This document shows, in pieces, positions 4,106 to 51,827 of a stretch of 64,000 nt of DNA. The position numbers and the translations under genes were made by a program. The notes under the pieces were generated by a model. It was given only the letters and a program-made list of their open reading frames with translations. It searched no databases and was not told the origin of the DNA. This DNA is from Amoebophrya sp. A120 (Eukaryota; Protista; Dinoflagellata), in contig CAJINV010000004.1 of NCBI GenBank assembly GCA_905178155.1, positions 814,629 through 878,628 of the forward strand, in the 5' to 3' direction. Position 1 is the stretch's first letter. Each line of letters starts with the position of its first letter.

Positions 4106-7100
4106 CGGTGCGAGGTGGAATTTTTTGAGGTTCTCCATGGTGGTTTTAACACCCATCAAAAAAATGAGATGCGCTACAGCACGCTTGCAATCCGGTGCAG
4201 AGAGAAGTCCGAGCGCCATTTCGTCAAAGTCCACCGTGGCTCCTGGTTTTTTCTGGGATCCGGCCCTCTGCTCGTCGACGTCGTTGCTGATCCAATCCAG
4301 GTCGAGTAAAAAACGCTATCAAATGCAAATATGTCTGGGTCTGGAACAAGGTTGCAAGTTGTGACGCGTCCTGTGGATCACACAAAAATCTGTTTTCGTC
4401 TTGTGAGATCTTCACCAAAAGATGCCCACTTTTGACCAACATGAGAGGGAGTTTCTCGTGCAGGATGCAACATAGTCATAGGCATGTATGATAGAGACTT
4501 CGCAGAATCTGTCATGCTAGGTCCTCCATTCCAGACCGCGTAGGGCATGGAAATTATGCATCGTGACAAGTTTGCAGCGCATTCTTCCAGACCCAGGCAT
4601 ATTTGCAATGCACAAGCGCACGTCTTTCGCACCTTCCACACTGTTGAAGCGGGTACCTTCGTCTGGCCCACGCACGTCGGTCGGCCCAGCGAGATGAAAC
4701 TCTTTTAACGCTGCCGAAAAGATACTGTGGTCGCTAATTTCCAAAAAGTCAGCGACATTGCCGATAGGATAAAGGGAAAAACATGCACAGTAAGTCAATA
4801 TGCACCCACACCAGCACCGGAAAACGTCCTGTATTCAACCACGTCTGCCTCTGCGGAAAATCCAGTACTGTGGCATTTCTCGTCAATAATTTCCAAAATC
4901 TTCTAATTCAGCCAGCGACCTCAATTTGTAAATTATGGATACCGATAACTTGATATACAAATGTTGCTGCCGCGAACGAAGATATCGATAAGTAGCAATG
5001 CGAAGGACTATCTTAGGTTCGGTGAGGAGGACACGACATATCAATCTTCATCCGATATCAAAATGCAGAGCTAGAGAAAGCGCCTCAGCATCCGCAAGAG
5101 CCGAGTTGTACGGATGCTGCCAAGAGCAAGACTCCAACAAAAAACGACAAATGCAAATAGTGAGCAGCTCTGCGTGGTTTTTCGTGTCGCTGCGGGCGCC
5201 GCACTTGCACTCCATAAACGGGCTTCCTCAGCACTTTCATCGTACTTATCTACCTATGCATTCCAAATACGTTGCCTGGGTGTGGACGAACCTTGCAACT
5301 CGTCAAAAGTTGCAAGATAGATTGCAGACCGATAGTACTTCAGCAGAACAAGGAAGTTCGAGCTGCTTGCAAGATTCCTCACTCAGCAGCGCAAGTTGCG
5401 CCGCTGCGTCTGATAAAGAAGTAGAAAAAGACACGTCTTGGACTGCAAGAAAATAGCGTGCGCCCTCTGAATCCCGATAAAGAGGGTGTCTCTCATGCAG
5501 CTGCAGGCTAGGCACGGAAAAGCCTCCGCGAATCTTGTCAGCACGCTCTGCGTGCATTCCAGACCTTCGCGCTGGTCCAAAGGATGCATGCAAATTCATC
5601 TGCATTCTTTTTCTTCCAATCCTAAACAGATTTGCAAGCGATAGCGTTCCTATTGTCTTCGGGACAAGCTGCCGACTCAAAACGCCACAGGCGATAGAGT
5701 TAAATACCTTTGTTGTTTTTGTATAAAAGTAGTTTCTGTTCTATTGGGTTGGAGATCACGCATAGTGGTCATACATTTACATACTAGACATAAAGAACTG
5801 GCGCTCCTGTTGGAGATGAATAGTTTGGAATATTAGTATTAAAATATCGACGACACCTCCACGCACGTCGCGGTCGTTCACGAAAGAGGAAGAAAAAAAA
5901 GTAGAAAATAATAATAAGGTAAAGGTGTAGATTGGGTACCCACGGATTGGGTACCCACTTTGGATTGGGTACCCACTTTGAAAAAGGTACTCATTTTGGA
6001 AACAGGTACCCACTGGGAAATAGGTACCCAGAGGGAGTCGGGTACTCAGTATGATTGTATGATTTGGGTACCCGGTGGCGTGGAAGCGAAATTGGTTCCC
6101 GTCCCCGTCCAGAACGCGCATGACACACCCGCGAAATTCAAAAATTTTATTTTTATGGTGTCCGTAAGCTAGTCGCAACACAGAGCCTTGCTGTATTTAA
6201 CAAGGTTGTTTGTATTCGCATCACAAATCCGCGAAAATTGAAAATTTTATTTTGGTACCGAGCTTCCCTCGTGCAGTTCAGCGCCGCCCCTTGCGATTAC
6301 TATATGCATCTTTAAACACGAAACCATCGCTCACTGGTTTTTTTATCGCGGATCAAAGAGATAAACTACATATTAAAAGGAATTGATGTTGATTCCGCTG
6401 GCAAACAACACTCGATGTGGCTTGCTGCATAATGGCATCCTCGCATCGGCATAGATACATCAAGACATCCTCAGCTGCCTAGTAGTAAACCTAGAGCGAT
6501 GATTCAGTCATTTCACTCAATAGGATTCCGCACTCTTCGATTGGCCAGAGGCAGAAGCGGAGAAGCTACACGCGTGTAATGCTGCAGCACTTAGGTGCGT
6601 CCATCTTATTGCACCGTGCTCTGGTTTTTCCTTACTCGTTCTGCCCCGCCGCGCTGCGAGGGACTCCCGAAAGGAGATGAGCCTCGGCAGTCGTGAGAGG
6701 AGTCCCTGATGCTTGTCTTGTTCGCTTTCCTCCATGGCCTTGAAAAGCACAGCGCCGTGAAAGAGGTCCGAAGCTAAGAGTGACAGCTCGTCTTGGCGCC
6801 AACCTGGAGGGTAGTAGTCATCTACCGAAAGTCCAACGCCCTCGGCCACCACCTTGCTTGCCGTTTTTCGTTCCTGGGGCTGGGAGGACCCAAAAAGAAA
6901 TGTGCTCATCACTTTATCGCGCACTCAGGTGGACTTACAACGCCAACTGTTACAGGGCCAATGTTTCAACATCCCAGCCAGATAGTCATACGATGACGCA
7001 ATGCAACGGATGAAAACGCAAGCACTAGACTAACTCCTGTCCCGTCGACATTGATCGCAGATACGCATCAGCATCACAAGTCGAAATCTAAAAAATTTCT

Positions 7101-16400: not shown

Positions 16401-19400
16401 CCGGCCGCTCCTGCTCCTGCTGTTTCGTCATCATCACCATTTCCGTGCGAGGCTTCACTTTCGACATCCAGTGGCTTTTTGTTACTTCGTTCCAAAGTTG
16501 AAGAAGTGGCAAACGCGTCGTTTAAATTCCCCTCCGGCCGTGCCGGAAGATCAACGCGCTCCACAACTGGTCCAGGCGGCTCGATGGCCGTTGGGCCGCG
16601 GTGCACTATCGCGGGCGTGGGGGGTTTTTCGTTGCCTTGAAGGCCCTCGTCGTGCTGATGATGATCACTTTCTTCGTGTCCAGCATGCTGACCAAGACCA
16701 TTTTGATCATGTGCAGCTGCTGCGACAACATCGTCCGCTACCACAGCTGCCAGCTCCTGCGCTTCTGGTTGTTGTTGATGCACGCCTGTCGATTGTTCGG
16801 CATCAGCCGGCGCAGCTGAGGGTTTTGAGGTCGAACTCGAACTCGCTACTGCTTTCGCCGGCGTGGTCCGATCCACAGCACTGGTCGGTGACGTACTACT
16901 CGTACTGCTGAAATCTGGCGCGGCAGCGGCACCTTCGGAGGATGCGGCGGAGGATTCATCGGACAGGAGTTGCAACTCGCCAACAGCGCCGAATAAGGTG
17001 TCCTGTCTCTGTTTTTCATCATCCGAAAAATGAGTTGCAGGTCGCTTTCCCACAGGACCGCGCTCTTGCCCCGCCGCATTCATTTTTTTCCTGTTCTCGG
17101 TTGCTCCATCGGTCTTTCCACCATCTCCACCAGCTTTCGCCACCGGTTTGTTCGCAGTAGAAGGCGGGCTTGTACCCGTCGTTTTTGTAGTACCTCCCCC
17201 GCCCCCGCCCGGGACTTGAGCTTGTGACGTGGAGGCAATTTTCTTTCCAGCCGGTGCTGGGTGAGCAGCACTAGCATCCGCATCCTTCTGGCGCGGCACG
17301 GTCAGCGTTTGGCCAGCTGCTGGTCCTACTTGATCATCGCTTACGCCCGCCTCCTGGTGCAGCGACAAGTGGTCTTCTGTGTTTGCAGCGACCCCTCGTC
17401 GTCCGCCGTCGGCAAAAAGAGCAGTAGTATGGCCAGATGGGGGTGCAGGTGTAGCTGTAGGTGCGGCAGGAGATGAACTTGAAGACCCTCCCGACAGTTC
17501 TTCTGTAGTCCTTGCGATAGCTGCGCCGGATCTGTCATCTTGCTTGTCTTCGACACTACTCAAAAACGAGGTTTGTTCCTCGTCATTTTTCTTCACGGCA
17601 GCATCTTCTGGTGCACCAGGGCCGAAAGCTTCATCGGTGGCAGTCGAAGTTCTTTGCGGTGAAGATGTTTCGTATCCTCGCGGGATATTCTCGGCTCCCG
17701 ATGCAGCTCCTCGTCCCGCGCTGACTTCATCTTCAGTCGTCGAGGTCGGCGAGCGCAGCATGCTTTTCTGGCCACTGTAAGCACTGTCATCTGCGCTACC
17801 AGCAGAAATTCCGTCGGTCGAATCCACGGCTGGAGCATCACCATTAGACAAGCTCCTTTCCGATTCCAGGGCCAAAGCCGACGTGCTCTTCGAAACATCT
17901 CGTCCAGCACCAGCTCCAGGTGGGTCGTTTTTACTACTTTCTATGGTACTCGAAGATGATGAAGCGGGTCGCTCTACTGCACTGATCCCACCTCCATGAC
18001 CACCTTCGTCCCAGCCGAACAGGGAAGCGAGCACTGAGGTGGTTACTGTAACCAGAGTTCTCGCGACGCTATCCTGGGGAGCCCCCGCGGCAAGCGCGCC
18101 GGGAGTCGAGCTTGTTTGCGCAAGGGAGCCTGCTTCTGCTGAAGTGCCGCGATTGCTGTCGCCCGACGATGAAGACGAAGAACCCAGCGAAGATGGCGGC
18201 CCCGGGTTCGACGTCTCCACCAAGGCGACTGTACGTCGGGGCTCGCGCCGCAACATTCTCTGCCGCGCGTCAACCAGCAGCATGCTGCACAACAGGACCA
18301 AGAAAAGCTTCATCACATTTTTGCTAGCTGGGGAAAATAAACCCGCCCAAGAGGTAGAAGAAGCAGGCATGACGCTCAACATCTCCCCGGTGCCGCGTGC
18401 CGCATTTTTCTTGCCGAGCGTGCTGGTCCCGGCCACGACTTCCGTAGCGGGTCCCCGGGAGATGGCCGGATGTTGATCTCCAAGCACATGTCTTACTGAG
18501 CGCTCTTCATCATCTTCGTGAGTGCTATGAGTGCTGCGTTTACTGTTCTTCTTTTTGTTTCTCTTCCGGTTTTTGTAGCTCAGCCCCTTCTGGTTTGTCG
18601 TTGTTGTTCTTTCTCCCCGCTGCATAACCTCGTCCTTCCCTTCGACAGATGAAGCAGCACTAGGTAGATGAGCCGTGCTGGTGGTAAGAGACGGCGCGCC
18701 AGCAGGTGGACGTAGCCCAGAAGTAGTTGCTGGTGGACTGTTCGGTCGCAGTACTGACGACAGTACAGTACTAGCCACTTCTGTAGAGCGATTGGACCCG
18801 CCACCGCTTTGGGTGGACGTGGAGGTCCCAGTCGCACAACTTGTGGTGATCTTGTGTCGCAGAACCTCCTCTGAACAAGTTGTAGACGCGCAGTCTTCGC
18901 TTCTGGTAAAAAAGTTGCTAGCACGCGAGCAACTGGATGCGATGGTGCGAGTCACGAACTCGGGACAAAAGCTCCTGGAGCAGCTCTTCATCGAAAAGCG
19001 CGCGGCTCTTGTCAATGCAGCTGTCATAATGTTGGATGAAAGTTGTCGCTCAGTAGAAGCCTGCAGTCGTCCCTCATCTACTTCACGTTGCGTGGTGGCG
19101 GAGGTGCTGCTCGACGCATCCTTGACACTACGCTGTTGCTCTGGTGGGGGCGTGACGTCCTGCGTAGAGCAACGGGCTGTTGTAGTCGTTGGAGCTCCAG
19201 CGGTGGAGGACAAGCTAGATTTATTCTTGGCGTCATCTTTTATTTACAGCTTGGACGCCCATGAGATATAGGGGCGGTGAATTTCAAGTGATTTTAGAGG
19301 TGGCGTAGAATCGCGGGGCCGGTCTTTCGGGTGGTTATGGTTCACGGGGCAAGGGCTAGCACAAATAGAGGTGATGGCGACACGGGGCTCGTCACCACGG

Positions 19401-21333
19401 CTCCCTCACATTGATTGCAATCCCCGTCCCGGCAACGCCCAACCGACCACATTTTTCCGCGTCTTTTTTCGCGAGGCAAGTCTTTTGGTGGTTTCATGAC
19501 TTTCTCCCTGCTTTCTCCACAGTTCAACTTCAACGTTTTAATTTTGGACAACAAAATCGCAAAAAAACGGCACTGCCATCGGGAAAAGCTTTCATTTAAA
19601 CATCATTCCCCATGGTATGATGAGGATGCATCTTTTGCTAAAAATCACCGATGTGGAGTGCCGTGCTGTTTCGCCCCAAAAACCAGCTTTAAAGTACCCC
19701 CTTTACCGATGGTATGCTGCGATCGGTGAATTTGGCGGTGAATTTAGAAATTGGTGGGCGGTGAATTTAGGAAATTTTTGCAATTTCCTAAATTCACCCC
19801 GACCTGATTCTGGATTCCAGACCATCACCAAATCAACACTCATTTTGCATTCATTTCTAAATTCACCGGAGTCGGAAAACCACACTCAAAACGATCGCCG
19901 CGCATTTGCTTCAGAAAATGCGAAACATTTGGCGCATGCACGCACAAATACAAAACCAACAAAATGCAAGCAGCACGCCACAAGGGCAGGCGAGGCATTG
20001 AATTGCTATGACTTCTTGCCGCAGCAGAAGGCGTGTGACAGATCAGGCGCCCGAGCCCGACAAGCCATCCGAAGCACTCAGAAAACAAAAATAACTGCGC
20101 GAAGCTATTTCGCAACCCATCATCCTAGGGGTGGGGCGCTGACAATGCAACTACACACTGAGGCGCCCCATCCCGGCCTTTTCTTTGCTGGAAAAATTCC
20201 GCCACCACCGGAAGCCTTTTGGAACTTACGTCGCTACGACTATTCCATCGGGTGGATGTCGATAATTCCGGGAGAAAATATTCGCAGCGCCACCTATCAA
20301 ATTCTTGCAGACCCCTAAAATCACGCGAAATTCACCACAGAGAAATCTAATGGCCATCCAAGCTGTAATCTTTTATTGGATTAGTCCCTCTACTTTCTTC
20401 AGATGACTTTGCTTTCTCGTCCGGTAGGACACTTTTTATCGTTCCTGTCCCTGCTGTCTGCGTCCGCTCCGTCGAGAATGCGGATTGCAGTCTGGTGCTG
20501 GTTGAGCTCCTCCTCCTCGTCGATACTGATGATTCCCCTTGTTCTTCCGCTTTCGCTTCATCTACTGCGATTTGCACTACCGGGAACTCGACCACGTCAC
20601 AGCTTTTTCTTCGTTGGTGATCCGCCGAGCTCGAAGGTTGTTGCACTGCGACAGCGTCTGCGTCTAATGAAGAAGAAGGTGTGCATACAATGCCCCCGCT
20701 GCCCATATTGCTACTTCTACTGATGCTCATCCCCCTCGGCCCTTTATTTCCCTTTTTACCTTGTTTATCTTTATGCTTTCTACTACTGCGCGCGCCGGAC
20801 TGCTTCTTGTCGTCGTGCCTTGACGCTCCCAGCACCGGCGGCTTCACTTTATTTCCCTCATGTGGCGCTGGCGGGGGACAAGCTCGCTGTGTTTCATCCT
20901 TCTTCACCTCAACCAAATGCTCCACAAGTGCGTCCTCAAACGCATGATCTTCTTCTTCGCCTTTCCCATACTCACACCCGCCACGTCGCGCTTGATTTTT
21001 CCGGCGTGCCGACGTGTGAAGTAGATGACCTGTGGATCCTGATCCAGCACGAAGAAGATTATTTCTGTGGTCACCTCGTCCAATACCTCCGCTGTTCCTT
21101 TTACCACAGCAAAGTCGCGCAATTGCTGTCCGCGCGTGAACGAGCAGGCTGCTGACGAGCTCGCGCAGCGACTCCAGCAGACTCGCAAACAGCCAGAAGA
21201 AAACTTCATAGAGTCGGGCAAGTACCCTTTTCGCAAAGTGGAGACTCGCAACTGAGTTTCGCTCCTGTGTTCGGCCGCGCGCGCCTAGGGATTCGCGTGC
21301 TCGTGCTTCGCTCTTGTTGTAGTTGCGCACCAT
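13453..21333 (-). CDS. Giant low-complexity hypothetical protein (~2,070 aa) with hydrophobic/signal-like segments
   Basis: Exons 21333-20368, 19234-16276, 16073-13822, 13491-13453 total 6216 nt and stay in frame. Joins: TNPIKD|DAKNKSSLSSTAG (1.1-kb TIR element removed) and DAFG|LVAELRR (GT-AG intron 16074-16275). The frame is open upstream to an acceptor at 21432, so the true start may be further 5'. The last intron is uncertain. Confidence 0.6.
13497..13821. mobile_element. Degenerate family D-like introner
   Basis: Right end reads tattgcgcggaaaaaaaaatccctccccac on the minus strand; left end cattcgcgaaaaagaaacttcttc. TSD not conserved. Element plus 5 nt is 330 nt and keeps the frame, but the ORF also reads through it. 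Confidence 0.4.
19245..20367. mobile_element. 1.12-kb non-autonomous TIR element with 8-10-bp TSD, inserted in coding sequence
   Basis: Imperfect TIR of about 65 bp (tacagcttggacgcccatgaga...ggtgaatttcaagtgattttag versus reverse complement tacagcttggatggccattaga...ggtgaatttcgcgtgattttag). Direct repeat atcttttatt at 19235-19244 and 20368-20377. Internal 17-bp-arm palindrome at 19760-19798. Confidence 0.85.
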
Positions 21334-35500: not shown

Positions 35501-37841
35501 TTTCCGCCTCTTCCCGGATCATGTGCAGGAATCGGCAGTCGAACCGCGCACACTTGCCCAACCGCCAGTCGGCGCAGAGCTCCGTAGGGCCGCTGTAGAC
35601 GTCTCCAGTATTGCCGTCGCGCAGCAGCAGGCTTGTGTCGTGCGAAAATTTGCACCGGCTGCCGCGGTCGCACCGGTTGTTCAAAAAGTCGTTGCAAATC
35701 TCGAGCGAAGTAGGATTGCGGTTACCGCCCATGTTGCTATTGCGATTATCATAATCGCCACCACGGCCGCCGCGACCTCGAGATCTGCGCCCACCGTCGT
35801 TCATCTGTGGTTTGAATTTTACGTTAGTTTTTCAGATCGTCGCTTGTTCAAGAACATTCTTGTTCGTGCATGCAACAAAAGCAGGGTTTCATCTGACAGA
35901 TCGTCGTGAAAAAGAGGCATATCCATATCATAACATAACATTTCCCAAGCTCGACGAGCATCAGCACCATGATGCAAAGAAACTAGAGCCCGCCGCTACA
36001 AGCAGTTTTTACCTGTCTTCCCCCGCCATTATTCGCTTCCAAGCTGCCGCTGAGGTCATGCGAAAATTTACAGTTGGCGCCCCTCATGCAGCGGTCCGCC
36101 TTGAACTCGCCGCAAATTTCCACGCCATTGCGATCTCTGGAGCGCTCGCGGTCCCGGCCAGAGAGCTGCCTTGATGTGTTGTTCGACATGCTCCGACCGT
36201 TCATGTTATTGCCTCCCCGAGGACCACCACCTCTTTGCGTTGGACCTCCACCCCGACCGCCCCGAGGACCGCCGCCGCCCATGTTATTGTTGCTGCGGCT
36301 GTCTTCGTAGTCGTCCTCGTCGCCGAACTGACTGTTCATGCTGTTATTCCTACTGGCGCTGTTGAAGGTGGGAAACAGGCGGTTGTTTGCGTCCTCGCAC
36401 ACGGGCGAATCATCTTCATCCCCCATGTGCATGTAATTGTCCTCGAAGGGGTTCTGCGTGTTATTGGACTTGATAGCATTTCCACCTCGTCCACCCCTAG
36501 CTCCGCCCCGGTTATTGTTGTCATTACCTCTATTGTTGCCACCAGGAGCACAACCTCGTGGTGGCAGGCGTTGTAGGTTGTTTCTTTCAGCTGCACCTCC
36601 CGTCTTCGACGTGTTCGTCATTCTGTTCTGATTTCGGTTCTCGCTCATATCGTCAACACTATCCATCATCATACCGGGTACGTTTTTCATTCCCGGCGGC
36701 GGGACGTAATCTTTGCCGAGCAGTTGCTTCTTCAGGATTTCGAACATCGGGTGGCTCAAACTTGGGTGGTACTTGTTGCAGTCCATGCCCTCGGAGCAGT
36801 GGACGCCGCTCTTGTCGGCGTCCTCCATCGGGTTGCGAATCCACTCCGCGCAAACCTCCACGTGCAACTCTGCCAGGGTGTTGTGGTTTTCGGGGTGCGC
36901 GCCGTCGCATTCCTCCTGGTCCTTTATGGATGTGTCAGAGTTGAAATCGACAAAGTTGAAATAATTTGTCATGCATAAAATGGATGCCAGGTGGAACCCA
37001 GTTTCCAAGTGGCGCATGACAAATTTCGGCGGTCCCTAAATCCAGGCTGTCACGCTGTTTAGGCAAAGAAGGGCGATTTTCTCATGCTACTTTAGCAGCT
37101 CGAGCTGTAACCCCAAACAGGCTCACAATCGGCCTCACTTGCCTGCTCTGCAACACACGCGCCTCGGGTCATGCATCTTATGCATTACAGATTATTTCAA
37201 CTTTGACGATTTCAAACCTGACGCTTCCATATCCTTGAAGCAGTTGTTATTCAGGTAGTCGTATCCTGTGCAAAAGTATCGTACTCGTATTGCGATCATG
37301 CATTACAAATTTTTTTCTCAAGGTAAATCCGCATTACAAATTTTATTTCTCATGCTGAGGAAATTTGTAATGCATTTATACGAGTACGATTCTTTTGCAG
37401 TTCACAAGTCGCTGCAAACCGGAACGGTTTTGTCCTTGGTATTGGGGTCTATGTTCCAGCAGGCGGGTGGGTGGAAATACCTGGGTTTAGGGAAGATGGA
37501 GGTGCAACAACAGCATGAGAGCAACGCCGTAAATCATGCACTCACGCATTTTCTACAATTTGAATTTCAATTTCCAATTTCTATTTCTCCCGCTTGTATG
37601 ATAACTCAAGAAGAACGGTAGAAAGCAAAAGTATTGCACTTGTGGTTGTGTTCTTGAGAACAAATTATCGCTACTTGCATTCCACCCGGTCGCACTTCCC
37701 CTTCAGAAAGTCGGCGCAAAGGGGGACCTTCCCGCGGTGTTTTCGCACATTCACCGGGTCGTCCACGTGGGCAAAGCGGCAGTCGCGCAAGTTGCACTCC
37801 CCCCGCTCAAATTTGCGGCACATTTGAAGCATGAGCACCAT
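32548..37841 (-). CDS. Muscleblind-like multi-CCCH zinc-finger/RGG RNA-binding protein (~662 aa, 9 CCCH-type fingers)
   Basis: Exons 37841-37675, 37480-37407, 37256-37232, 36919-36013, 35804-35385, 32943-32548 total 1989 nt in frame. The first finger pair CRKFERGECNLRDCRFAH...CADFLKGKCDRVECKYFHPP resembles the MBNL tandem zinc finger. Three GT-AG introns and two introners. Start uncertain (possible short exon near 38041). Confidence 0.8.
33080..33270. repeat. Degenerate ~28-bp tandem repeat (AATTTTGTACCCT.CCCGATT..CCT)
   Basis: About 6 decayed units at the start of the intronic repeat block. Confidence 0.75.
33417..33845. repeat. 16-bp minisatellite (CGGAAACCGGGAAACG), about 27 copies
   Basis: Near-perfect tandem array. 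The variant changes near the N at 33542, so the true length may be collapsed in the assembly. Confidence 0.95.
33880..35095. repeat. Higher-order satellite: runs of a 30-bp unit (TGTTTTGCGCGTGTGGTCCATCCGCCYCAG) alternating with a ~160-bp GC-rich unit
   Basis: The long unit (gtaaagggagtatcgcgcccgagattccgcgacg...) starts at about 34070, 34321, 34662 and 35041, separated by 3-7 copies of the 30-mer. Confidence 0.9.
36925..37231. mobile_element. Introner family B, 307 bp
   Basis: ~55-bp TIR tatggatgtgtcagagttgaaatcgacaaagttgaaataat...; TSD tcctt. Removal completes the finger CSDYLNNNCFKD|QEECDGAH. Homologous to 46286-46593. Confidence 0.93.
37262..37406. mobile_element. Introner family C, 145 bp
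   Basis: TIR tatcctgtgcaaaagtatcgtactcgta (outer 7 nt of the right copy diverged); TSD agtcg. Reverse complement of 47143-47290. Confidence 0.9.
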
Positions 37842-42294: not shown

Positions 42295-45200
42295 TCAAAA
42301 CGAAAAGCCGATTCCCGGGTTGGAGATTTGGCGCATGATTTCGATGACCTGCCCGTCTGGATTGTAGGTGGTCAACTTGACAAAAGACGGCTCCATCACG
42401 GAATCCAGGATGTGCTCCACGTCCGCCTGCTTCAAAACCCCCTCCTTGGTCAGGTGCTGCAGCATGGTGCTCTTATTGATCAAGAGCAGTCGGGCGGCCA
42501 AGATGTGTTCCAACATGATGAACATCTCGGGCGACTGTTTGTGCAGCTGGTACAGCTTCTCCGCCATGGCAGCTTCCAGTAAGTGGTTCACCGTGTTTTT
42601 GATGTGCGGAAAATCATCGAACACGGGCAGTTCCTCGATCAGAGTTTCGTTCACGATGATGAACGCGAAAATCGCCTCAAAATGCCGCTTGGAAATGTCC
42701 CACTTCGTGCGGAGCAGGCTAGATTCCGAAGGTTTGAACCACCTGCGCTGCTGATTATGATTTTTCTGGGAAGAAGCTTTTGCTTGTTTCGCTTTCTTCT
42801 CCTTCTGGAGCTGCTGTTTGTTTTTCGATTGAGCATTGCTATCGTCTGCTCCTTCCATGAGCTCTTTAGTCGTAGCACGACCACCACCAGCTCCTGCTCC
42901 CTGCAGATCATTGAGACTCGTGCTTTCCGCCAGACAGAGGCTGCTCCCGCTGTCGCCGTGGAGCCAATTGCTGAATTTCCACCGCAGGCCGACGCCGGAA
43001 CTCAAGCAGTGGAGTAAGCAGTCCCAGAAGACTTCCAAACTGGCCTCGCACTGCACTCGGTGGGGCTGGAGGTGGAGTTCCGGAAAGTGTCCGTTCGTCA
43101 GAAAGCAGTACTCTTGCAGCTCCCCCTGGACCGCCTCTTGTGCGTATTCGAAGGCCTCTATCACATGTAAAAATGTCTGGGTCTGGAAGAATTCATGTTT
43201 GTCATGCTTGTCTGGCATGACCCTTAAATCTGTCATGCACGTTACCCAAGAGCTCCGCTTTTCTGTGATGCAGAAGCGCACTTTGTCATGCAGAATAGGC
43301 AACGCCTAGGAGCTCAGAAACTTGTCATGCTGAGCCAGCATCTGTAGCCTCATCATGAGACGCCACCCAGCATCACAAGTTTCCAGACCCAGACATTTTT
43401 ACATTTGGTAGCCTCCATCAAGGCACGATACGTCAACTCGGAAATCACTTGCAACTCGTACATATCAAATGCAAAAGTGTCTGGGTCGGGAAGATTGCGA
43501 GATTTGTCATGCTTGTCTGGGATGACCAAAAAGTTTGTGATGCATTTCCAAGAAGACACCCTTTCGTCTGTTATGCATTGTCATGCGAAAAACGCAACAC
43601 AACGAAGCGCAGATATTTCTCATGCTTGGCTGGGCATTGCAGAGCATTCACTATTCCCAACACAGCATTACAAGTTTCCAGACCCAGACATATTTGCATT
43701 TGATAGTACAGTTCGCTGTACCCCGCGAAAGACGCGTCGAGGATGGTTTGGTACAGCTCCGCAGCGGTTTCAATGTCCGCCGTGATCGCCTGCCGCACGT
43801 TCAGCATGGAAATCGTGTTGGACATGTTGTGCGGATTGGAACTGTTGGGCGCATAATTACTGTTGCAGCTTTTGCTGCCGGACGCGAGGAAGGTGTTGTC
43901 ATCTTCATCAGAGTTGTTGCCAGATTTTTGCAGCCCGTCGGGCGAAGATCCATCTCCACAACCTGCTGCTCCACGAAGACGACCGCTCCCGCGGCCAATG
44001 CGATCCTGTTCGCAGGAGCGGTGTCTGGGTAGAGACGGTGGCCGGTGCGGCGTGCGCAGGTTTGTGTCGTTGATGATTGTACCACCTGCGATGTTGCTTG
44101 TGTCAACTGCATGAGCTGCTTGCGGACCTGTTCCGTTGAACCCCGAAGTTGTAGATAATGGAAGCAGTACCCCTGCCGAATTCCTCCTTCGCTGTTGTTC
44201 TACTTGCTGTTGATGTCCCGCACCTCCCGCCCGAGCAGCTTTGTCTTGGCTGATAGACCGCCGGAATTCATCCAGAACTAAAAGCGACGAAGTGGAAGCC
44301 TTCTTATTTTGCAGCAACTCCTCGCTCATTTCACTCGTACTGTCCCGCGGACCACCTCCTCTGGTGGGAAACATACCACGGGTAGATGATTTCATAGTAG
44401 TTCCGAATGCCCCACCGTCCACCTCCTCTTCCCCCCCTCCACCTACCGGAAGCGGCGATTCGTTGTCGATAATGGAGATCCTTACGCTCTTCCGCGCCTC
44501 CCCGCGGTTGTCGATGTTCGAGGACGCGCGGCCGCGGGTGCTGTTCTGGAGGATGGATTTTGGCTGCAGGAGGGCGGCAGTGGTCATCGTCATGCTGGGC
44601 GAAACCGCGAGTTCGGGGTGGTCTTCGAACATGGAGTTCTTATTCATCAGGTCGGAGGAACTCTCTTGATGACCATGTATTTCGTCCTGCTCCACGAGCT
44701 CCGCTGAATTCCGGCCAGTTTTACAGATGATGCTGTTCTTCGCAGTCTTCGTCCTGGTTGTAGTTGACGTAGTTTTGTCATTTGCAAAAACGTCCGCCAC
44801 AGCAGCTCCGCTATTTAATGTCGCAGTTTCTTCAACAGCTCCACCACAACCGACATTTTCGTCCACAGACTGCCTGTGCGCGGCCGGCGTGATGTCTGCG
44901 TCTTGGTCGGTCTCTGATTCGTCGTAACTGCGCCGTAGCATCTCTTCATTCGCAATCAGATGATCCTCCAACTGGGAGCTAGTGCTGTTTCGTTTATTGA
45001 TATTGGCACAGGCGCCAACGTTTACGTTATGCCCGTTATTGTTCATCCCAACGCCGCCTACATCCAACACCGAGCCATTCACGAGATCAATCTTCGAGCT
45101 GGCTCCAAAATCAGTTCCACCAGGACCTTCGTTGCTTTTCAGTTTTTCCGTGTGCTTCGTGACGCGTTGGTTCTTGATCGCTTTGTTAAAGAAGCGAATC

Positions 45201-48200
45201 AGGCTGCGCAGCGTCCGGGGCTCGTTCGACGGGAGAGAGGCGATGACGGTGTCTAAAGGCAGGTCTTCGTGGTCGATTAAATTACTGATCCGCTTTCCAA
45301 ACAGCTCGTCAGGATGATCCTGATCGTTCTCACTGCTTTCGACGTGAAGATTCACCGTGTCGGTTTCATTGACATTCTCGTTGCTGTTTACGCGCTTCGG
45401 CGGTCCGTGTTCTCTAATTGATGCGGTAGATCTTCCCGCATGTTGACAAAACGCCGCCATCTCGACGTCCACAGCTTGGTGCTTGTTCAACATCTTCCGG
45501 CTCGTCGTGTCACCATCCTCTTCGAAATAACTCCTGCTTCCCGAGCGGAGTTCAGATAATAACTGCTGCGAAGTGGCGGGCGGCCGGGAATCTATTTCAT
45601 CCAAACCCGTCAAATAAAGCTGCGAAGTACTAGAAGATGAACTTGCCTTCCCGATTGCCCCACCAGTCGCCAGGAATTCTTGCGTTTTGTTCGACCGCAA
45701 TCCCTGCAACACGCTCGCATTGGATTTCAGCGGGAACTCGAAGTTTTTCTTTTTCCCGGACCAACAAAGTAACGGCGTCTTGCTGGCGGAGAAGGCGGAG
45801 GAAGAGTTCTGGCAGGAAGATTTCCGCGGAATTCCGGGCCGGTGCAACTTCTTGCTCTTTGGATGAATCATGGCAACTCCTTGAACAGCAACAGCGGCAG
45901 CTCCAGGTCCAGGTGCAGAAGTGCCCATGGTTGTATAATTCTGCTTCTTTAACGGCACCCCCTCCACCACCACACTGGCACACGAACTTGTTGAACCGCG
46001 TCGCCCACGACCTGCGTAGTCGTGCCCACTCGACGTGTTCGAGTTTCGCTTCAACAACATCGTCGTGTTCCTGGCAGCTGCGTCAAGATCTAGTACATGA
46101 TCCTCCTCGGCGCCGCTGCTGGACAAGTCGGAGGATGTTTTCACTTTCTTCCTCTTTCTCTGCGACATGGTCGTGGTCATGATCTGTTGCTGCGCAATCG
46201 CCCCGGCAGAATTGGAATGCGACGTCGTGGTCCCACTGGTCCCAGCAGGGTATAAATGGTTCCGTAAGTCGCTCGCATTCAGCATTATGGATGTGTCACC
46301 TTTGAAATCGTCAAAGTTGAAATAGTTTGTCATGCATAAAACGGATACCAGTTAGACCTACAGTTTGTAGTCGGTGCATGGCAAATTTTCCCGGTCCTGG
46401 AAGCGAGTCTGTCATGCGGTTTAGGGCAAAAGAGCTGCCTTCTGTCATGCTAGTTAGCAGTCCAACTTTTGACCCTTACCAGGACTATAATCTGCCTCCC
46501 TTGGGTCCTCTGCAATAGAGTCACTTTTTGTATCGCATTTTATGCATTACAAATTATTTCAAGTTTGACGATTTCAAACCTGACGCTTCCATAAGCATCT
46601 CGCGTTGCGTACACAACGATAACCCGCGAACCGACGAGAATCAACTGTAAAAATGTCTGGGTCTGGAAACTTGTGATGCTGGGTGGCGTCTCATGATGAG
46701 GCCACAAATGCTGGCTCAGCATGACAAGTTTCTGAGCTTCTAGGTGTTGCCTATTCTGCATGACAAACTGCGTTCTTGCATCACAGAAAAATGGAGCTCT
46801 TGGGTAACGTGCATGACAGATTTAAGAGTCATGCCAGACAAGCATGACAAACATGCATTCTTCCAGACCCAGACATTTTTACATTTGATAACGAGAATTC
46901 GGACGCAAACTCGATCTTCGCACGGTACCGCGACTCTTTCTCCACGTTCAGCATCGAGGCCAGCTGCATCATCAATCGCTGGACCCGTTTGTCGGTGATC
47001 TGGGACTTGTTGTCCGCGGTTAAATTCCTCGCGATCGCGTCGTCTGAAGATTTGAAAATCCGGTGTAACTGCGGGATCAACAAGTCCAGGATCTCGAAGT
47101 TGCAGTTGTGGAAGAACCAGTGCTTCTGCATCTGTTTCTGTTTATTCTGTGCAAAAGTATCATACTCTTACAAATGCATTACAAATTTTCTCAGAATGAG
47201 ACATGAAATTTGTAATGCTGATTTACCTTGAGGAAAAGATTTGTAATGCATGACTGCATTACGAGTACGATACTTATTTTGCACAGGATACTGTTGCGCC
47301 TTGGACAAAATCTCCGCCTGGCACAGCGCGCGGTGGAGCAGTAAAGAGTGGTGCTTCGCGGAGTCGTAGACGGAGAGGTAGTGATACAGCGGCGTTTATC
47401 CTGAGAAAAAACACCCCCACCCCATAGACATAGTCAAGATGGGAAAGCTGCTAGACAAATCAGCCAGCTTTGGTTGTTGCGCATGACAAGTTTGGCCTCG
47501 TAGTGTGATTCTGTTTAAATTGTTCAGCAGCATCACAGAAGATCTGGCCTATTATACTGATTGAAGCATTACAAATTCCAAAACACGACCAGAAAACGCT
47601 TGGCATAGGGCTCCGCATGAGAAACATCTTGAGCATGCAGAATTGCATGAGAGCTATGGGGTGGGGACGTTTTTGCATTTGATAGCGTGATCGTCGTGCC
47701 GTTGATGAAGATCGTCAAGAGTGCGATCCCCGAGACGTGAAACGCGATCCGCGCCCGCGTACCAAATGTAAAAATGTCTGGGTCTGGAAGGATGCGAACT
47801 CGTCATGCAGCTTTTCCATGACCCATGAGGTCTGGAATGCAGGACCTAGCATGACAGATTCTGCGCGATCTCTTTCATGCCTATCCTGCATGAGAAACTC
47901 CCTCGCGGCTTGGTCAAAACTGGACGACTTATGGTAATCATGCAACACAGATTTTTGCATGCTTCAGATTTAGCATGACAAGTTGCATTCTTCCAGACCC
48001 AGACACTTTTACATTCGATACCGCGTCTCTAACGGCAACACGGTCGAACTCGTGTCTATGGGATTCTCAAACGTTTCATTCTCAACTGTTACATGAATTT
48101 GCGATGCGAGAATAGCAAAAGTGAGAGGAGGGATCGTGCGCGTCTTGCATGACAGATTTGGCGCCGATTATGAGCCTGCTTGGCCCTCTGGGAATTTGTC

Positions 48201-51071
48201 ATGCGAAGCAGCTTGATGGTGTCGATTCTGAAGGCAATTTTGCATGACAAATCATGTAACAGTTGAGAATGTAACAATTGAGAACGCCATAGTGTCGGAT
48301 TCGACCAAAATCGCCATCGCCAACCCAACCGCACCGCGTAAACCGCTGTACACGAGAATGATGCACTCCTTCATGGTCATGCCGTATCCGGACCTTTTCA
48401 AAAACGGGTACAAGACCGCCACGACAATGGCTCTCGTCAGGTGCACCAAAAAGTACAGCACGATCAGTTCGATCCAGTCTCGGGGGAGCAAATTGGCCTG
48501 GAAACTGTAGCGGTACCCCACCACGCCGGCGAGGACGAAGATCAACTCGTTGGACACCAACGCGAGAAACGCGATCACGGTGTGGTGCGAGTGCGCGTGC
48601 TCGCCCGCGATGCTGTACTGCCCCGTGGCGGACATTGCGAAGCCGAAGGTAACGATGGCGAGAACGGCCGACACCTCGATGTCGTGGTGGTCCGCGACGA
48701 AAAAGGTCCCGTAGGCGCCGACAATCACGATAAACAGCCCGACCTGGTAGGACGACTCCTTATTGTTGTTGATGTTCCCCGCGTTTTTCGTCACATTCCG
48801 GAGCAGAAACAGCGTGATGCAGAAAGAAATGATTCCGACAAAAATGCCGCCGAACGCCAAATACGCAAACTGAAACGTGACATCCGTGAAGGAAAACGGT
48901 TTCAACCCCTTTGCGAGGTCGAGGAAGACCAGAAACAGCAGCACCCCCGACCCGTCGTTTAGCAGCGCTTCGCCGGAGATCAGTAAAGTCAATTTCGCGG
49001 GCGCGTGAAGGTTGTGCAAAGCGCCAATGACCGCGACGGGGTCGGTCGCGGAAAGGATGGCACCGAGCAGGAGCGCTTCGGAAACCGTGAACCCCTGCCA
49101 GGAGGAGGAGGTGGAGGTGGAAGAAGTCGCAGCTAGGAGGCGGTTGGTGCTGTGTGTAGAAGAGGTTTGGCTCACGCTGAACGCTGTTGGCCCGTTTTCG
49201 TCTTGGTGTACTTCTTGCTGGGTCGTTTCTGTTCGCTGTTGTAGAAGTTGTTCCTGCTGCTGCAATTGTGGAGGGAGAAACACGAGTGAGCCCTGTTCCG
49301 GAATCAACGAGGACAACTCATTCGCGGCATTGGGAATGGTTCCCATGCTGGACGACCTTGCGGTAGTGAAAGGCGTACTGGAAGTAGAACCCGTAGAGGT
49401 AACACTCTCCGCCGCGTCCGCGAAAGCGCTCGAAGCGGTAGAGGGAAAGGGAGGCACTTCTGAATCCAGATCCATTGACGTAGAAGATCCTGGTAGCAAC
49501 GTCCCGGTACTAGCACCAGCTGGCGCGGCTCCACTCGGGCCGACCACCATTCCCTGTGCTGGTCCAGCTCCTGCTCCACCCGGAATTATGGTATAATTAC
49601 TTCCAGCTCCAAAAAACGTAAATTTTCCGAAGGTGAAGTACAAAAACGCCCCGGTCAGCACTGTGTTCAAAATCGCGCCGGGTAAGGCCAGCAGCAAACT
49701 GTTCGGCAAAACCCTCCTGCCCACGTGCCAAATGGTCTTCGCGGAGTCCTCATAGAGGAGCGCCGGGAGCAGAATCCAGAAGATCACTTTTGGGTCGATG
49801 TTCTGCGCCACTTCAACCGCTTCGGAAATTTCGTAATCCGGGCAAACGGAGGAAAAGTGGGACAGGAGCAAGCCCGCGCAGTACAACATGACGGAGTGCG
49901 GAAAGTCGAAGGGCAGGACTTTGTGCAGAACGTCCTGCAGCATCTGGCAGCAGGCGGAAATGAAGAGAGCGAGGAGAACGAAATAGAGCGGGTAAAATGA
50001 CCGGGACAGGATGTGCGACTCCGTGTGCAAGGTCTGCTCACCGTGGACCCTCATAGATGCGCGCTGCTGGAGTAGTCCTCCACCTGCTCCGCCGGGAGCT
50101 ATCTCTCCACCGCCCGCCGCTGCAGCTCCTCCGGAACCACCCTCAGCGTTCGCAGCAGCTGCTCCCGAAGATATTAATGCGATATTTTGCACATTTTTGT
50201 GCTCGTGCAGATAACTGTAGTCGACGAGGCAAATCGCTAGATAAGATTTGTAGTTCCGGCTGCGGTCCCGTGCGTCCGTCTTGGTTTGCAAGTACAATTT
50301 CGACGCTTGTTGGTCGTAGTAGCACCCCGCGTGCTTCATCAAATCCTGGGGTGTTTCTTCCAGGGGCTCCACGGTCAGGAGGAAAGACTTCGTGTGCGGG
50401 TCGACGGTTCTGCGTCTCAACCCAAGTTCGTAGTTCGCGACCCGGGCGCATTCTTCCGCGGTGAGAATTTGAAATTCGTGGTCGCACCTCTCGGGCGTTA
50501 GGTGGTACAGCTTGCTCGTCGGCGCGGTGGAAGGGGAAGAGATAGAATCTTCAAGAACCTCCGACGTGGCCGCAAGGACATCCCTTGTACCAGGTGATAG
50601 ATTTCGCCTTGCTCGTCCAACAGTGACGAATGGATTGGTGCTGCCCTCGTTCGTTTCAGAAATGCCACTGTGTCCAGCCGCCCACGATGATGAAAGTCGT
50701 GGTCGAGGTGGCCCTCGTGCTGACCCGGAAGCTGCAGCACGATTTCCCTTGCTCTTCCAAAGCAACAGCACCGGTGAGAGCAGCAAGCAGAGGGACAAGA
50801 GGGAATAGATCCCAGAACGAGTTTTCGAACAAGACTGATGCTTCGCCATCATTTTCAACTCCATCTTCGGTGATGACAATGCATTCACTCGCCACACAAT
50901 AAGTAGATACCCGGCAACAGCGAAAAGGATCAACTTGACAACCGATTTATTTCTTTGTCTCTCGGGCGGGGGGGGGGGGGGTGGTGAGCGTATGATTTTC
51001 AACAATCTTACTCGCATTCTCTCAGCAACAGACGATGTCGAACAACAAAATGAAGATTTTACATCCCGCAT
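42295..51071 (-). CDS. CPA1-family Na+/H+ exchanger (SOS1/NhaP-like), ~2,249 aa, 8 introner introns
   Basis: LLPALLYE, GAILSATDPVAV, LISGEALLNDG, SGLRGAVGLAMA motifs. Exons 51071-48292, 48051-48021, 47754-47685, 47391-47291, 47137-46891, 46633-46594, 46280-43706, 43457-43411, 43153-42295 total 6750 nt and recover the last TM helix IAFHVSGIALLTIFINGTT. Confidence 0.9.
43159..43410. mobile_element. Introner family A, 252 bp
   Basis: 30-bp TIR; TSD gcctc; joins ALMEA|FEYAQE. Near-identical reverse complement of 46639-46890. Confidence 0.95.
43463..43705. mobile_element. Introner family A, 243 bp
   Basis: TIR tatcaaatgcaaaagtgtctgggtcgggaa; TSD gtaca; joins YSELY|ELQVIS. Confidence 0.93.
46286..46593. 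mobile_element. Introner family B, 308 bp
   Basis: ~55-bp TIR; TSD agcat; joins QREML|NASDLR. Confidence 0.93.
46639..46890. mobile_element. Introner family A, 252 bp (opposite orientation to 43159-43410)
   Basis: TIR aatcaactgtaaaaatgtctgggtctggaa / tatcaaatgtaaaaatgtctgggtctggaa; TSD acgag; joins SEFS|SVRGL. Confidence 0.95.
47143..47290. mobile_element. Introner family C, 148 bp
   Basis: TIR tattctgtgcaaaagtatc / tatcctgtgcaaaataagtatc; TSD ctgtt; joins SKAQQ|KQMQKHW. Confidence 0.92.
47397..47684. mobile_element. Introner family D, 288 bp
   Basis: tatcctgagaaaaaacacccccaccccatag / tatcaaatgcaaaaacgtccccaccccatag; TSD gcgtt/gcgtg; joins NGTTIT|PLYHYL. Confidence 0.88.
47760..48020. mobile_element. 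Introner family A, 261 bp
   Basis: 31-bp TIR; TSD ccgcg; joins PLETR|ARIAFH. Confidence 0.93.
48057..48291. mobile_element. Introner family F, 235 bp
   Basis: ~40-bp TIR tatgg..ttctcaa....cattctcaactgttacatga; TSD gtgtc; joins VESDT|SSTVLP. Confidence 0.9.
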
Positions 51072-51827
51072 GGCGTTTTTTGCTGCTTCTGCTTCCCGAA
51101 TGCGCGGCGAACTAGAAAATGTACTTCTAGGTCTGCGTCAAGTTCAAGAACTGTGGAAAAAGCAAAACATAAAGAAATTCGAGATCCCCATGAATCACTT
51201 CGCGAGGACCAACTCCCCTGCTCCGTATCCAGACGAAAATTATCAACATGCTGTCCTCGTGTAAAATCCCTCACGGTCACGGAGCCTGGAAAATAAAAGT
51301 TCGTCAGCTGCTTTCCAAATTGATTAGAAGCCATGATGAAGTGCTCGCGCGTGACAACACGTCAGATCTAGATCTTTCTAGTGGTCGGGGTTTGAAGATA
51401 ATAAAAGTCAAGTTTTGACTTGAATTTAGGGGGGAATACAAGAATGTCACGCATGCGAACTATTTTAACTAGTTTTTGTTTTTTGTTTTCAAGAGGGACT
51501 TTTACCTGTTTGATTTTGATTTGATTTTCTTTTGATTATTCACCCGTAGATGATTAGCTATGCGCGCAATAAGAACAACACTTCGGCCCTTGCCGTCTCA
51601 CCATCAAGAACCTCTCTACCCGATGAAGTAGACCTAATGAGGACAGGTCGGGGCTTGAAGATAATAAAAAAAAAAATAGTAATACTAAATGGGTGATGAA
51701 CTTCTTGCTGCAATAGAACACGACCGTCAGATAGAAAAAAGTAAAAGATCAAGTTAGGGTTAGCATAAATAGTATAAAAATTCTTCTTTGAACAAGGGGG
51801 GTGTTGGTCTTTGTTTGGTACTTTTCA

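Follow-up and report, generated by a model that had tools for sequence, protein, structure and literature searches.

An introner family of Amoebophrya sp. A120 that is removed from a single transcript in both orientations

The unusual introns of Amoebophrya have been described for strains A120 and A25 as introner elements with inverted repeats at their ends, direct repeats of 3 to 5 nt at their borders, a motif of TAT, 7 nt and AAA, a hairpin and no GT-AG, occurring in thousands of copies and in strain-specific families (Farhat 2021, PMC7789003). In A120, 66.6% of introns have splice sites classed as 'other' and about 30% are GT-AG; 29,850 introns are repeated, and the hairpin model was advanced for a genome in which U1 was not detectable and U2 was published as present (PMC7789003). 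How about two-thirds of the parasite's introns are removed without GT-AG and without detectable U1 has been a question since 2021. The orientation of the elements relative to the gene goes unmentioned in the main text and one supplementary file of that study (PMC7789003), and introner surveys since then have fixed one orientation when comparing intron ends. Introners that work both ways are known from Aureococcus anophagefferens (Huff et al. 2016) and Polarella glacialis (Roy et al., 10.1101/2020.10.14.339549), in which, as here, the element is spliced out together with one copy of its target-site duplication (TSD). We analyzed a stretch of 64,000 nt of the A120 genome (the window), in which one minus-strand gene carries two copies of the same 252-bp introner, here called family A, in opposite orientations. 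The elements are the same object as those already published (introner elements, Farhat et al. 2021, PMC7789003), and a tally of their orientation adds a modest constraint to that phenomenon.

One gene with family-A copies in opposite orientations

Coding in the window is almost wholly on the minus strand. The host gene carries at least eight introner introns between 43159 and 48306, two of which are the family-A copies:

42298 to 51137, minus strand: host gene, a Na+/H+ exchanger (Pfam PF00999, upstream part) with a long orphan C-terminal tail
43159 to 43410, plus strand: family-A introner, putative miniature transposable element with inverted repeats (MITE), 252 bp, reference orientation, antisense to the host gene; exact 5-bp TSD GCCTC at 43154-43158 and 43411-43415
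46639 to 46890, minus strand: family-A introner, putative MITE, 252 bp, inverted copy, sense relative to the host gene; exact 5-bp TSD ACGAG at 46634-46638 and 46891-46895

A first-pass annotation, made from the sequence alone, had noticed that these two segments are near-identical but reverse-complemented within one gene, and this observation is sound. BLAST aligns 43159-43410 with 46639-46890 in reverse orientation at 94.8% identity over 250 nt, and their arms (43159-43407 and 46642-46890) are 94% complementary over 249 nt. The 24-nt core of their terminal inverted repeats (TIRs) occurs 10 times in the window, compared with no occurrence in 100 shuffles.

The annotation had further held that both copies must be removed to keep the frame. 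A three-frame reading of the host-gene strand bears this out for both copies and corrects the unit, which is 257 nt (the element plus one 5-bp TSD) rather than 252 nt; a 252-nt cut at the borders it proposed would leave the 5-nt duplication behind. The reading takes in two further inserts:

43463 to 43705, plus strand: diverged family-A relative, 243 bp, oriented as the copy at 43159-43410; TSD GTACA at 43458-43462 and 43706-43710
46286 to 46593, strand unassigned: introner of a family unrelated to A, 308 bp, ends TAT...ATA, TIRs of 57 nt; TSD AGCAT at 46281-46285 and 46594-46598

Across the four inserts the frames run 0, 2, 0, 2 and 1, and they become continuous only after the loss of each element with one TSD copy, that is, of 257 nt at 46639, 313 nt at 46286, 248 nt at 43463 and 257 nt at 43159. 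In the 43463 insert, GT-AG is impossible at all 6 equivalent cut positions.

An independent view of the junctions came from a search with the single exon 43706-46279 (minus strand; no joined model was used) against 1.84 billion representative proteins. It returned one match, the public gene model P0001 of 1742 aa, which is 100% identical to the exon and reads over the junctions as predicted: ...RALMEAFEYAQ... at the 43159 site, ...GYSELYELQVIS... at the 43463 insert, ...QREMLNASDL... at the 46286 insert, ...IEFASEFSSVRGLS... at the 46639 insert, ...SKAQQKQMQKHW... at the 47143 insert and ...PLETRARIAFH... at the 47760 insert, with ...IEFASEFSSVRGLSLCTQREMLNASDL... and ...GYSELYELQVISELTYRALMEAFEYAQ... 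among the junction-spanning stretches. Since P0001 is continuous across all of these sites, including those of both 252-bp copies, both orientations are removed in one transcript.

Loss from the RNA, not from the DNA

Two sequencing runs, X1 and X3, were compared over 5,701 nt. Run X1 is probably a DNA library; X3 is guessed to be RNA and holds 0.77 of the sampled words, near the exon share of the stretch. Junctions were read from contig pieces; the read-mapping table was swamped by cross-mapping between repeat copies. Over the same 5.7-kb stretch, the runs X10 to X12 (RNA-seq, 2026) gave almost no reads; a different source strain, or a very low share of parasite, is the probable reason.

In X3, a contig of 3821 nt covers 46173 to 43706, then 47 nt, then 43153 to 42700; the insert at 43463 and the one at 43159 are missing from it, each along with one TSD copy. 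A second X3 contig covers 48374 to 48292, 101 nt, 47391 to 47291, 47137 to 46891, 40 nt, and 46280 to 46151. This contig lacks exactly the 46286 and 47143 inserts and the inverted 46639 copy, and the 101 nt between 48292 and 47391 fit the loss of three more inserts (47397-48306). The claim that one family is removed precisely in both orientations is thus upheld by these probable RNA contigs together with the P0001 protein.

The same annotation had listed precise excision at the DNA level, analogous to the removal of internal eliminated sequences (IESs) in ciliates, as one candidate. Such a pathway, by which an element-free template would be transcribed, has some appeal: the transposon-derived nature of the inserts, their TA-containing ends, the direct repeat and the precise loss all resemble Paramecium IESs, and X3 as RNA is only a guess. 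The X1 contigs contradict it. Records 1 to 5 (43158-47143) run unbroken over all exon/element junctions at a depth of 36 to 49, compared with 42.7 for unique exon, and no element-free contig is among the X1 pieces listed, although contigs can miss rare variants. Nor is this organism known to have nuclear dualism. Moreover, the published DNA assembly carries the elements, and its introns were validated by RNA-seq (PMC7789003). At exon depth, the X1 contigs mean that the DNA keeps the elements, and we conclude that removal takes place at the RNA level; IES-like excision is very improbable.

The other inserts discussed here, within the host gene and elsewhere in the window, are the following:

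47143 to 47290, strand unassigned: introner of another TATC-type family, 148 bp, 5-bp TSD, 153 nt removed; inverted relative of 37262-37406
47760 to 48020, minus strand: family-A-related introner, 261 bp, TSD CCGCG at 47755-47759 and 48021-48025; inverted, diverged relative of 4317-4614
37262 to 37406, strand unassigned: introner, 145 bp, exact TSD AGTCG
4317 to 4614, plus strand: family-A-related introner, 298 bp, TSD AACGC / AGCGC (one mismatch)

These include the two additional inverted pairs of the first-pass annotation, both of which are real: 37262-37406 and 47143-47290 share 88% identity in reverse over 142 nt, and 4317-4614 and 47760-48020 share 79-85% in reverse over 120 and 41 nt. 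Taking out 4317-4614 plus 5 nt leaves an open, coding-like frame. At the sites with diverged TSDs (47397-47680 and 4317-4614) either retained copy would be synonymous. At first sight the element at 46281-46598 is of a TTA...TAA type with a 3-bp repeat, but TATGG...CCATA bounded by a 5-bp repeat (in gene sense, ATGCT) is the better reading. Under this reading, all eight inserts of the host gene share TAT...ATA-type ends, and at least six have a 5-bp TSD.

The tail of the host gene (42298-46280, the C-terminal 1150 aa of P0001) has its own gene model as its sole homologue among the 1.84 billion representative proteins; no sister-strain counterpart of the exon 43706-46279, in which an empty site could be compared, was among them. 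An orphan tail of this kind is in line with published work that ties introner-rich genes to sequence that evolves fast.

Family A across the genome and the signals at its ends

A first look for the 252-bp element in its own genome gave 2332 candidates. By an asymmetric internal 26-mer (up to 2 mismatches), found 675 times in forward and 679 times in reverse orientation over the whole genome, family A comprises at least 1354 copies. We examined a sample of 52, 50 fetched loci among them. An exact 5-bp TSD flanks 46 of the 52, and in the alignment of 50 copies identity to the query is 92-100% and divergence from the consensus 2-3%. No target-site consensus was found among the sampled insertions, which argues that an insertion survives independently of any splice-like target sequence.

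A tally of element orientation relative to the host gene was the check that the first-pass annotation had proposed. We called the gene strand with a classifier of codon log-odds, for which seven long open reading frames (ORFs) of the window served as the training set and which made 40 copies callable; an alternative call by the frame left open across the junction was dropped, antisense frames being often open as well. The outcome was 16 copies in the same and 24 in the opposite orientation (p=0.27 against 50:50). Judged by the flanking frames, the removed length is 2 mod 3, as for 257 nt, in 10 of 10 confidently called copies (3 same and 7 opposite); for the whole set the figure is 26 of 40.

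With TIRs, a TSD of fixed length and variable sequence, and many short near-identical copies that lack coding capacity, family A has the sequence hallmarks of MITEs. Integrase-type (rve) ORFs of 366-1213 aa are present in the genome (loci L051-L056; contigs C180, C13, C2 and C1), and may be candidates for the integrase-like TIR transposons that have been reported for A120 (Gozashti et al. 2025); the six loci are free of family-A TIRs to a distance of about 1.5 kb. As a general matter, TSDs of 5 bp would suit a DDE enzyme of the integrase-like or Transib-like kind. The window itself holds a 1.1-kb element (19244-20368) with 58-nt TIRs and a plus-strand ORF of 258 aa (19542-20315) for which there is no Pfam match.

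The 252-bp copies have 30-bp TIRs starting TATCAAATGTAAAAATG, and the family consensus begins TAT-CAAATGT-AAAAA, in agreement with the A120 repeat motif, in which TAT and 7 nt precede three or more A. Its ends being inverted repeats, the element as transcribed always has the 5' end TATCAAATG... and the 3' end ...CATTTGATA, whichever way it is inserted, and the 3' TIR always supplies the YTNAY-like TTTAC about 10-15 nt from the 3' junction. The first-pass annotation had inferred a strand-symmetric signal from two-way removal. This does not follow: inversion preserves the TIR ends and with them any polar end signals, TTTAC included, so orientation independence does not exclude such signals. What two-way removal does exclude is that the asymmetric interior, about 190 nt long, holds a signal that is required, and everything needed should therefore lie in the 30-nt TIRs and the 5-nt repeat.

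The exclusion extends to a 9-mer, TTGTCATGC (reverse complement GCATGACAA), that lies in the interior. It occurs 18 times in the window, 8 times on the plus and 10 times on the minus strand, compared with 0.75 expected (for example at 43199, 43283, 43322, 46327, 46719, 46758, 46842, 47481, 47973, 48196 and 48242), and is found in introners of several unrelated TIR families on both strands, even though the minus strand carries almost all the coding. Instead of a splicing signal, the 9-mer may be a repeat to which a transposase binds near the element ends.

The borders themselves offer little to a conventional spliceosome. The TSD creates six or more equivalent cut positions per copy. In 33 of 36 copies none of these positions would yield GT-AG, GC-AG, GA-AG or AT-AC, and in 22 of the 36 none would give even G..G or A..C as the intron-terminal nucleotides. 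The annotation's proposal that recognition relies on the TIR stands to the extent that only TIR and TSD are common to both orientations and that GT-AG is so widely unavailable; the part it gave to a stem is something we can only infer.

Folding predicts one and the same terminal stem, about 30 bp long, for the sense RNA of either orientation, at -125 and -109 kcal/mol (z = -7.4 and -7.7). Among the 50 copies, most of the 30 TIR positions pair in 46 to 50, while positions 1, 3, 7, 8, 10 and 15 are more variable, with pairing down to 25 of 50.

Strong hairpins also raise the question of an artefact. Short direct repeats beside a strong hairpin are the classical signature of template switching by reverse transcriptase, which could yield false spliced cDNA while the elements stay in the mRNA, and stems as stable as those predicted here would favor it. 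However, frames continue only after the 257-nt loss in all ten confident copies, as they do only after removal across all eight inserts of the host gene; retained elements would bring stops into tens of thousands of coding sequences (29,850 repeated introns); and the spliced X3 contigs are the form assembled at full depth. We therefore give template switching hardly any weight.

Candidate routes of removal and known systems

Taken together, the family-A elements are in all likelihood copies of a young non-autonomous TIR DNA transposon (a MITE), part of the published A120 introner elements, whose removal would depend on features of their TIRs and TSDs. The element inserts into coding DNA in either orientation, making a 5-bp TSD, and the host gene survives since its pre-mRNA loses exactly the element and one TSD copy. 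Whatever serves for removal must belong to the parts that inversion leaves alike, the 30-nt TIRs and the direct repeat beside them, and in the RNA the TIRs would form a stem, about 30 bp long, by which the two exon ends are brought next to each other. We infer that the TIR stem or ends, together with the repeat, are the recognition determinant.

Several observations weigh against this account. Conservation among the 50 copies is no higher in the TIRs than in the interior (divergence 3.4% vs 2.3%), and on the gene-sense strand TIR changes show no bias to transitions that would preserve wobble pairing (11 vs 26 disruptive; in the interior 59 vs 62). Population genetics thus gives no hint that each stem pair is under selection; either the stem puts up with several mismatches, or its pairs are not individually selected. 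The cut site within the TSD is ambiguous among the equivalent positions. The small nuclear RNA (snRNA) U6 is present in about 10 copies and GT-AG introns make up about 30%, so that a spliceosome exists and could take part. Finally, the assignment of X3 to RNA is a guess, and the raw RNA runs under the same species label yielded 3 reads (X10) and 0 reads (X11). As for U6 itself, at least 8 full-length, near-identical copies are spread over several contigs (C1:322202, C2:2679845, C5:7891161 and others).

As to the enzyme, we lean slightly to a spliceosome-independent, structure-guided pathway that cuts and ligates, by analogy with what is suspected for the nonconventional introns of Euglena, because the terminal nucleotides are arbitrary and there is no target preference. 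A relaxed, U1-independent spliceosome is a weaker but serious candidate, and anything else appears improbable. In its explicit form, the spliceosomal explanation holds that a modified U1-independent spliceosome acts via a lariat on polar signals inside the TIRs, with the stem replacing the bridging across the intron. The presence of U6 speaks for it, as do the constant start of the 5' TIR and the constant TTTAC of the 3' TIR. It is also in keeping with a genome that encodes nearly all spliceosomal proteins while U1 went undetected (Farhat 2021, PMC7789003), and with the spliceosomal nature of the two-way introners of Polarella and Aureococcus (10.1101/2020.10.14.339549). Set against this, 33 of 36 copies offer no canonical dinucleotide pair wherever the cut is placed, 22 lack even G..G or A..C, and splice-like target sites are not enriched among surviving insertions. 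Our own Rfam searches of the genome for U1 and U2 lend the explanation no help: they gave no match, with about 45 of about 2000 candidates scored, and are uninformative, having also missed the U2 published as present. On balance, we regard this lariat model as rather unlikely.

Returning to the cut-and-ligate pathway, its boldest extension would be a second, spliceosome-independent system of intron removal for nuclear mRNA, which would recognize the terminal RNA stem with the repeat beside it and would cut and rejoin the RNA, perhaps with the release of circles, and which would have arisen in an alveolate independently of Euglena as the host's answer to MITE invasion. We put this forward tentatively, as a conjecture about as easily wrong as right and, if anything, somewhat more easily wrong. 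If it is true, orientation independence is built into the mechanism. Whatever the enzyme, orientation independence is now quantified for one family (16 vs 24), with both orientations removed in a single transcript, and the TIR plus the 5-nt repeat make a compact, testable substrate for finding it.

Compared with the published account of the Amoebophrya elements, family A differs in two respects. Farhat 2021 gives inverted repeats of 8-20 nt, whereas family A pairs over 30 nt; and that study doubts transposase-mediated mobility, whereas family A shows textbook exact 5-bp TSDs. The two-way introners of Aureococcus and Polarella take G[T/C/A]-AG from the TSD or the TIR and are bound by target constraints (GHN6/AGGH), while family A has neither. 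Nor does family A show the GT/GC-AG or AT-AC termini by which a U2-type spliceosomal intron is recognized.

Pathways that join RNA by an endonuclease and a ligase, such as tRNA splicing at a bulge-helix-bulge or the action of IRE1-RtcB on HAC1/XBP1, would explain both removal without GT-AG and independence of the interior. In family A, however, neither a bulge-helix-bulge nor an IRE1-type loop is seen, and the flanking repeats are direct, not complementary. Ciliate IESs (Paramecium, PiggyMac) are likewise transposon-derived inserts in coding sequence that are removed precisely, leaving one copy of the repeat; they differ in being eliminated from the DNA of the somatic nucleus, whereas Amoebophrya DNA keeps its elements.

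The closest functional analogue is found among euglenids, in their nonconventional introns (Milanowski et al.; PMC12501133; PMC6221363), which have non-GT-AG borders, TIRs that pair in the RNA and direct repeats that make the borders ambiguous, are suspected to derive from MITEs, and coexist with conventional introns. Family A combines the same non-canonical borders with end-to-end RNA pairing, the latter as predicted by folding, and in this sense resembles the euglenid type. Euglenids belong to another supergroup and have a short pairing core, which makes their introns an analogue of family A rather than fellow members of one class. In Euglena it has been shown experimentally that the inverted repeats are required for splicing and that the introns are excised as full-length circles. 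Family A thereby offers a natural experiment for comparison with both the nonconventional introns of Euglena and the canonical two-way introners.

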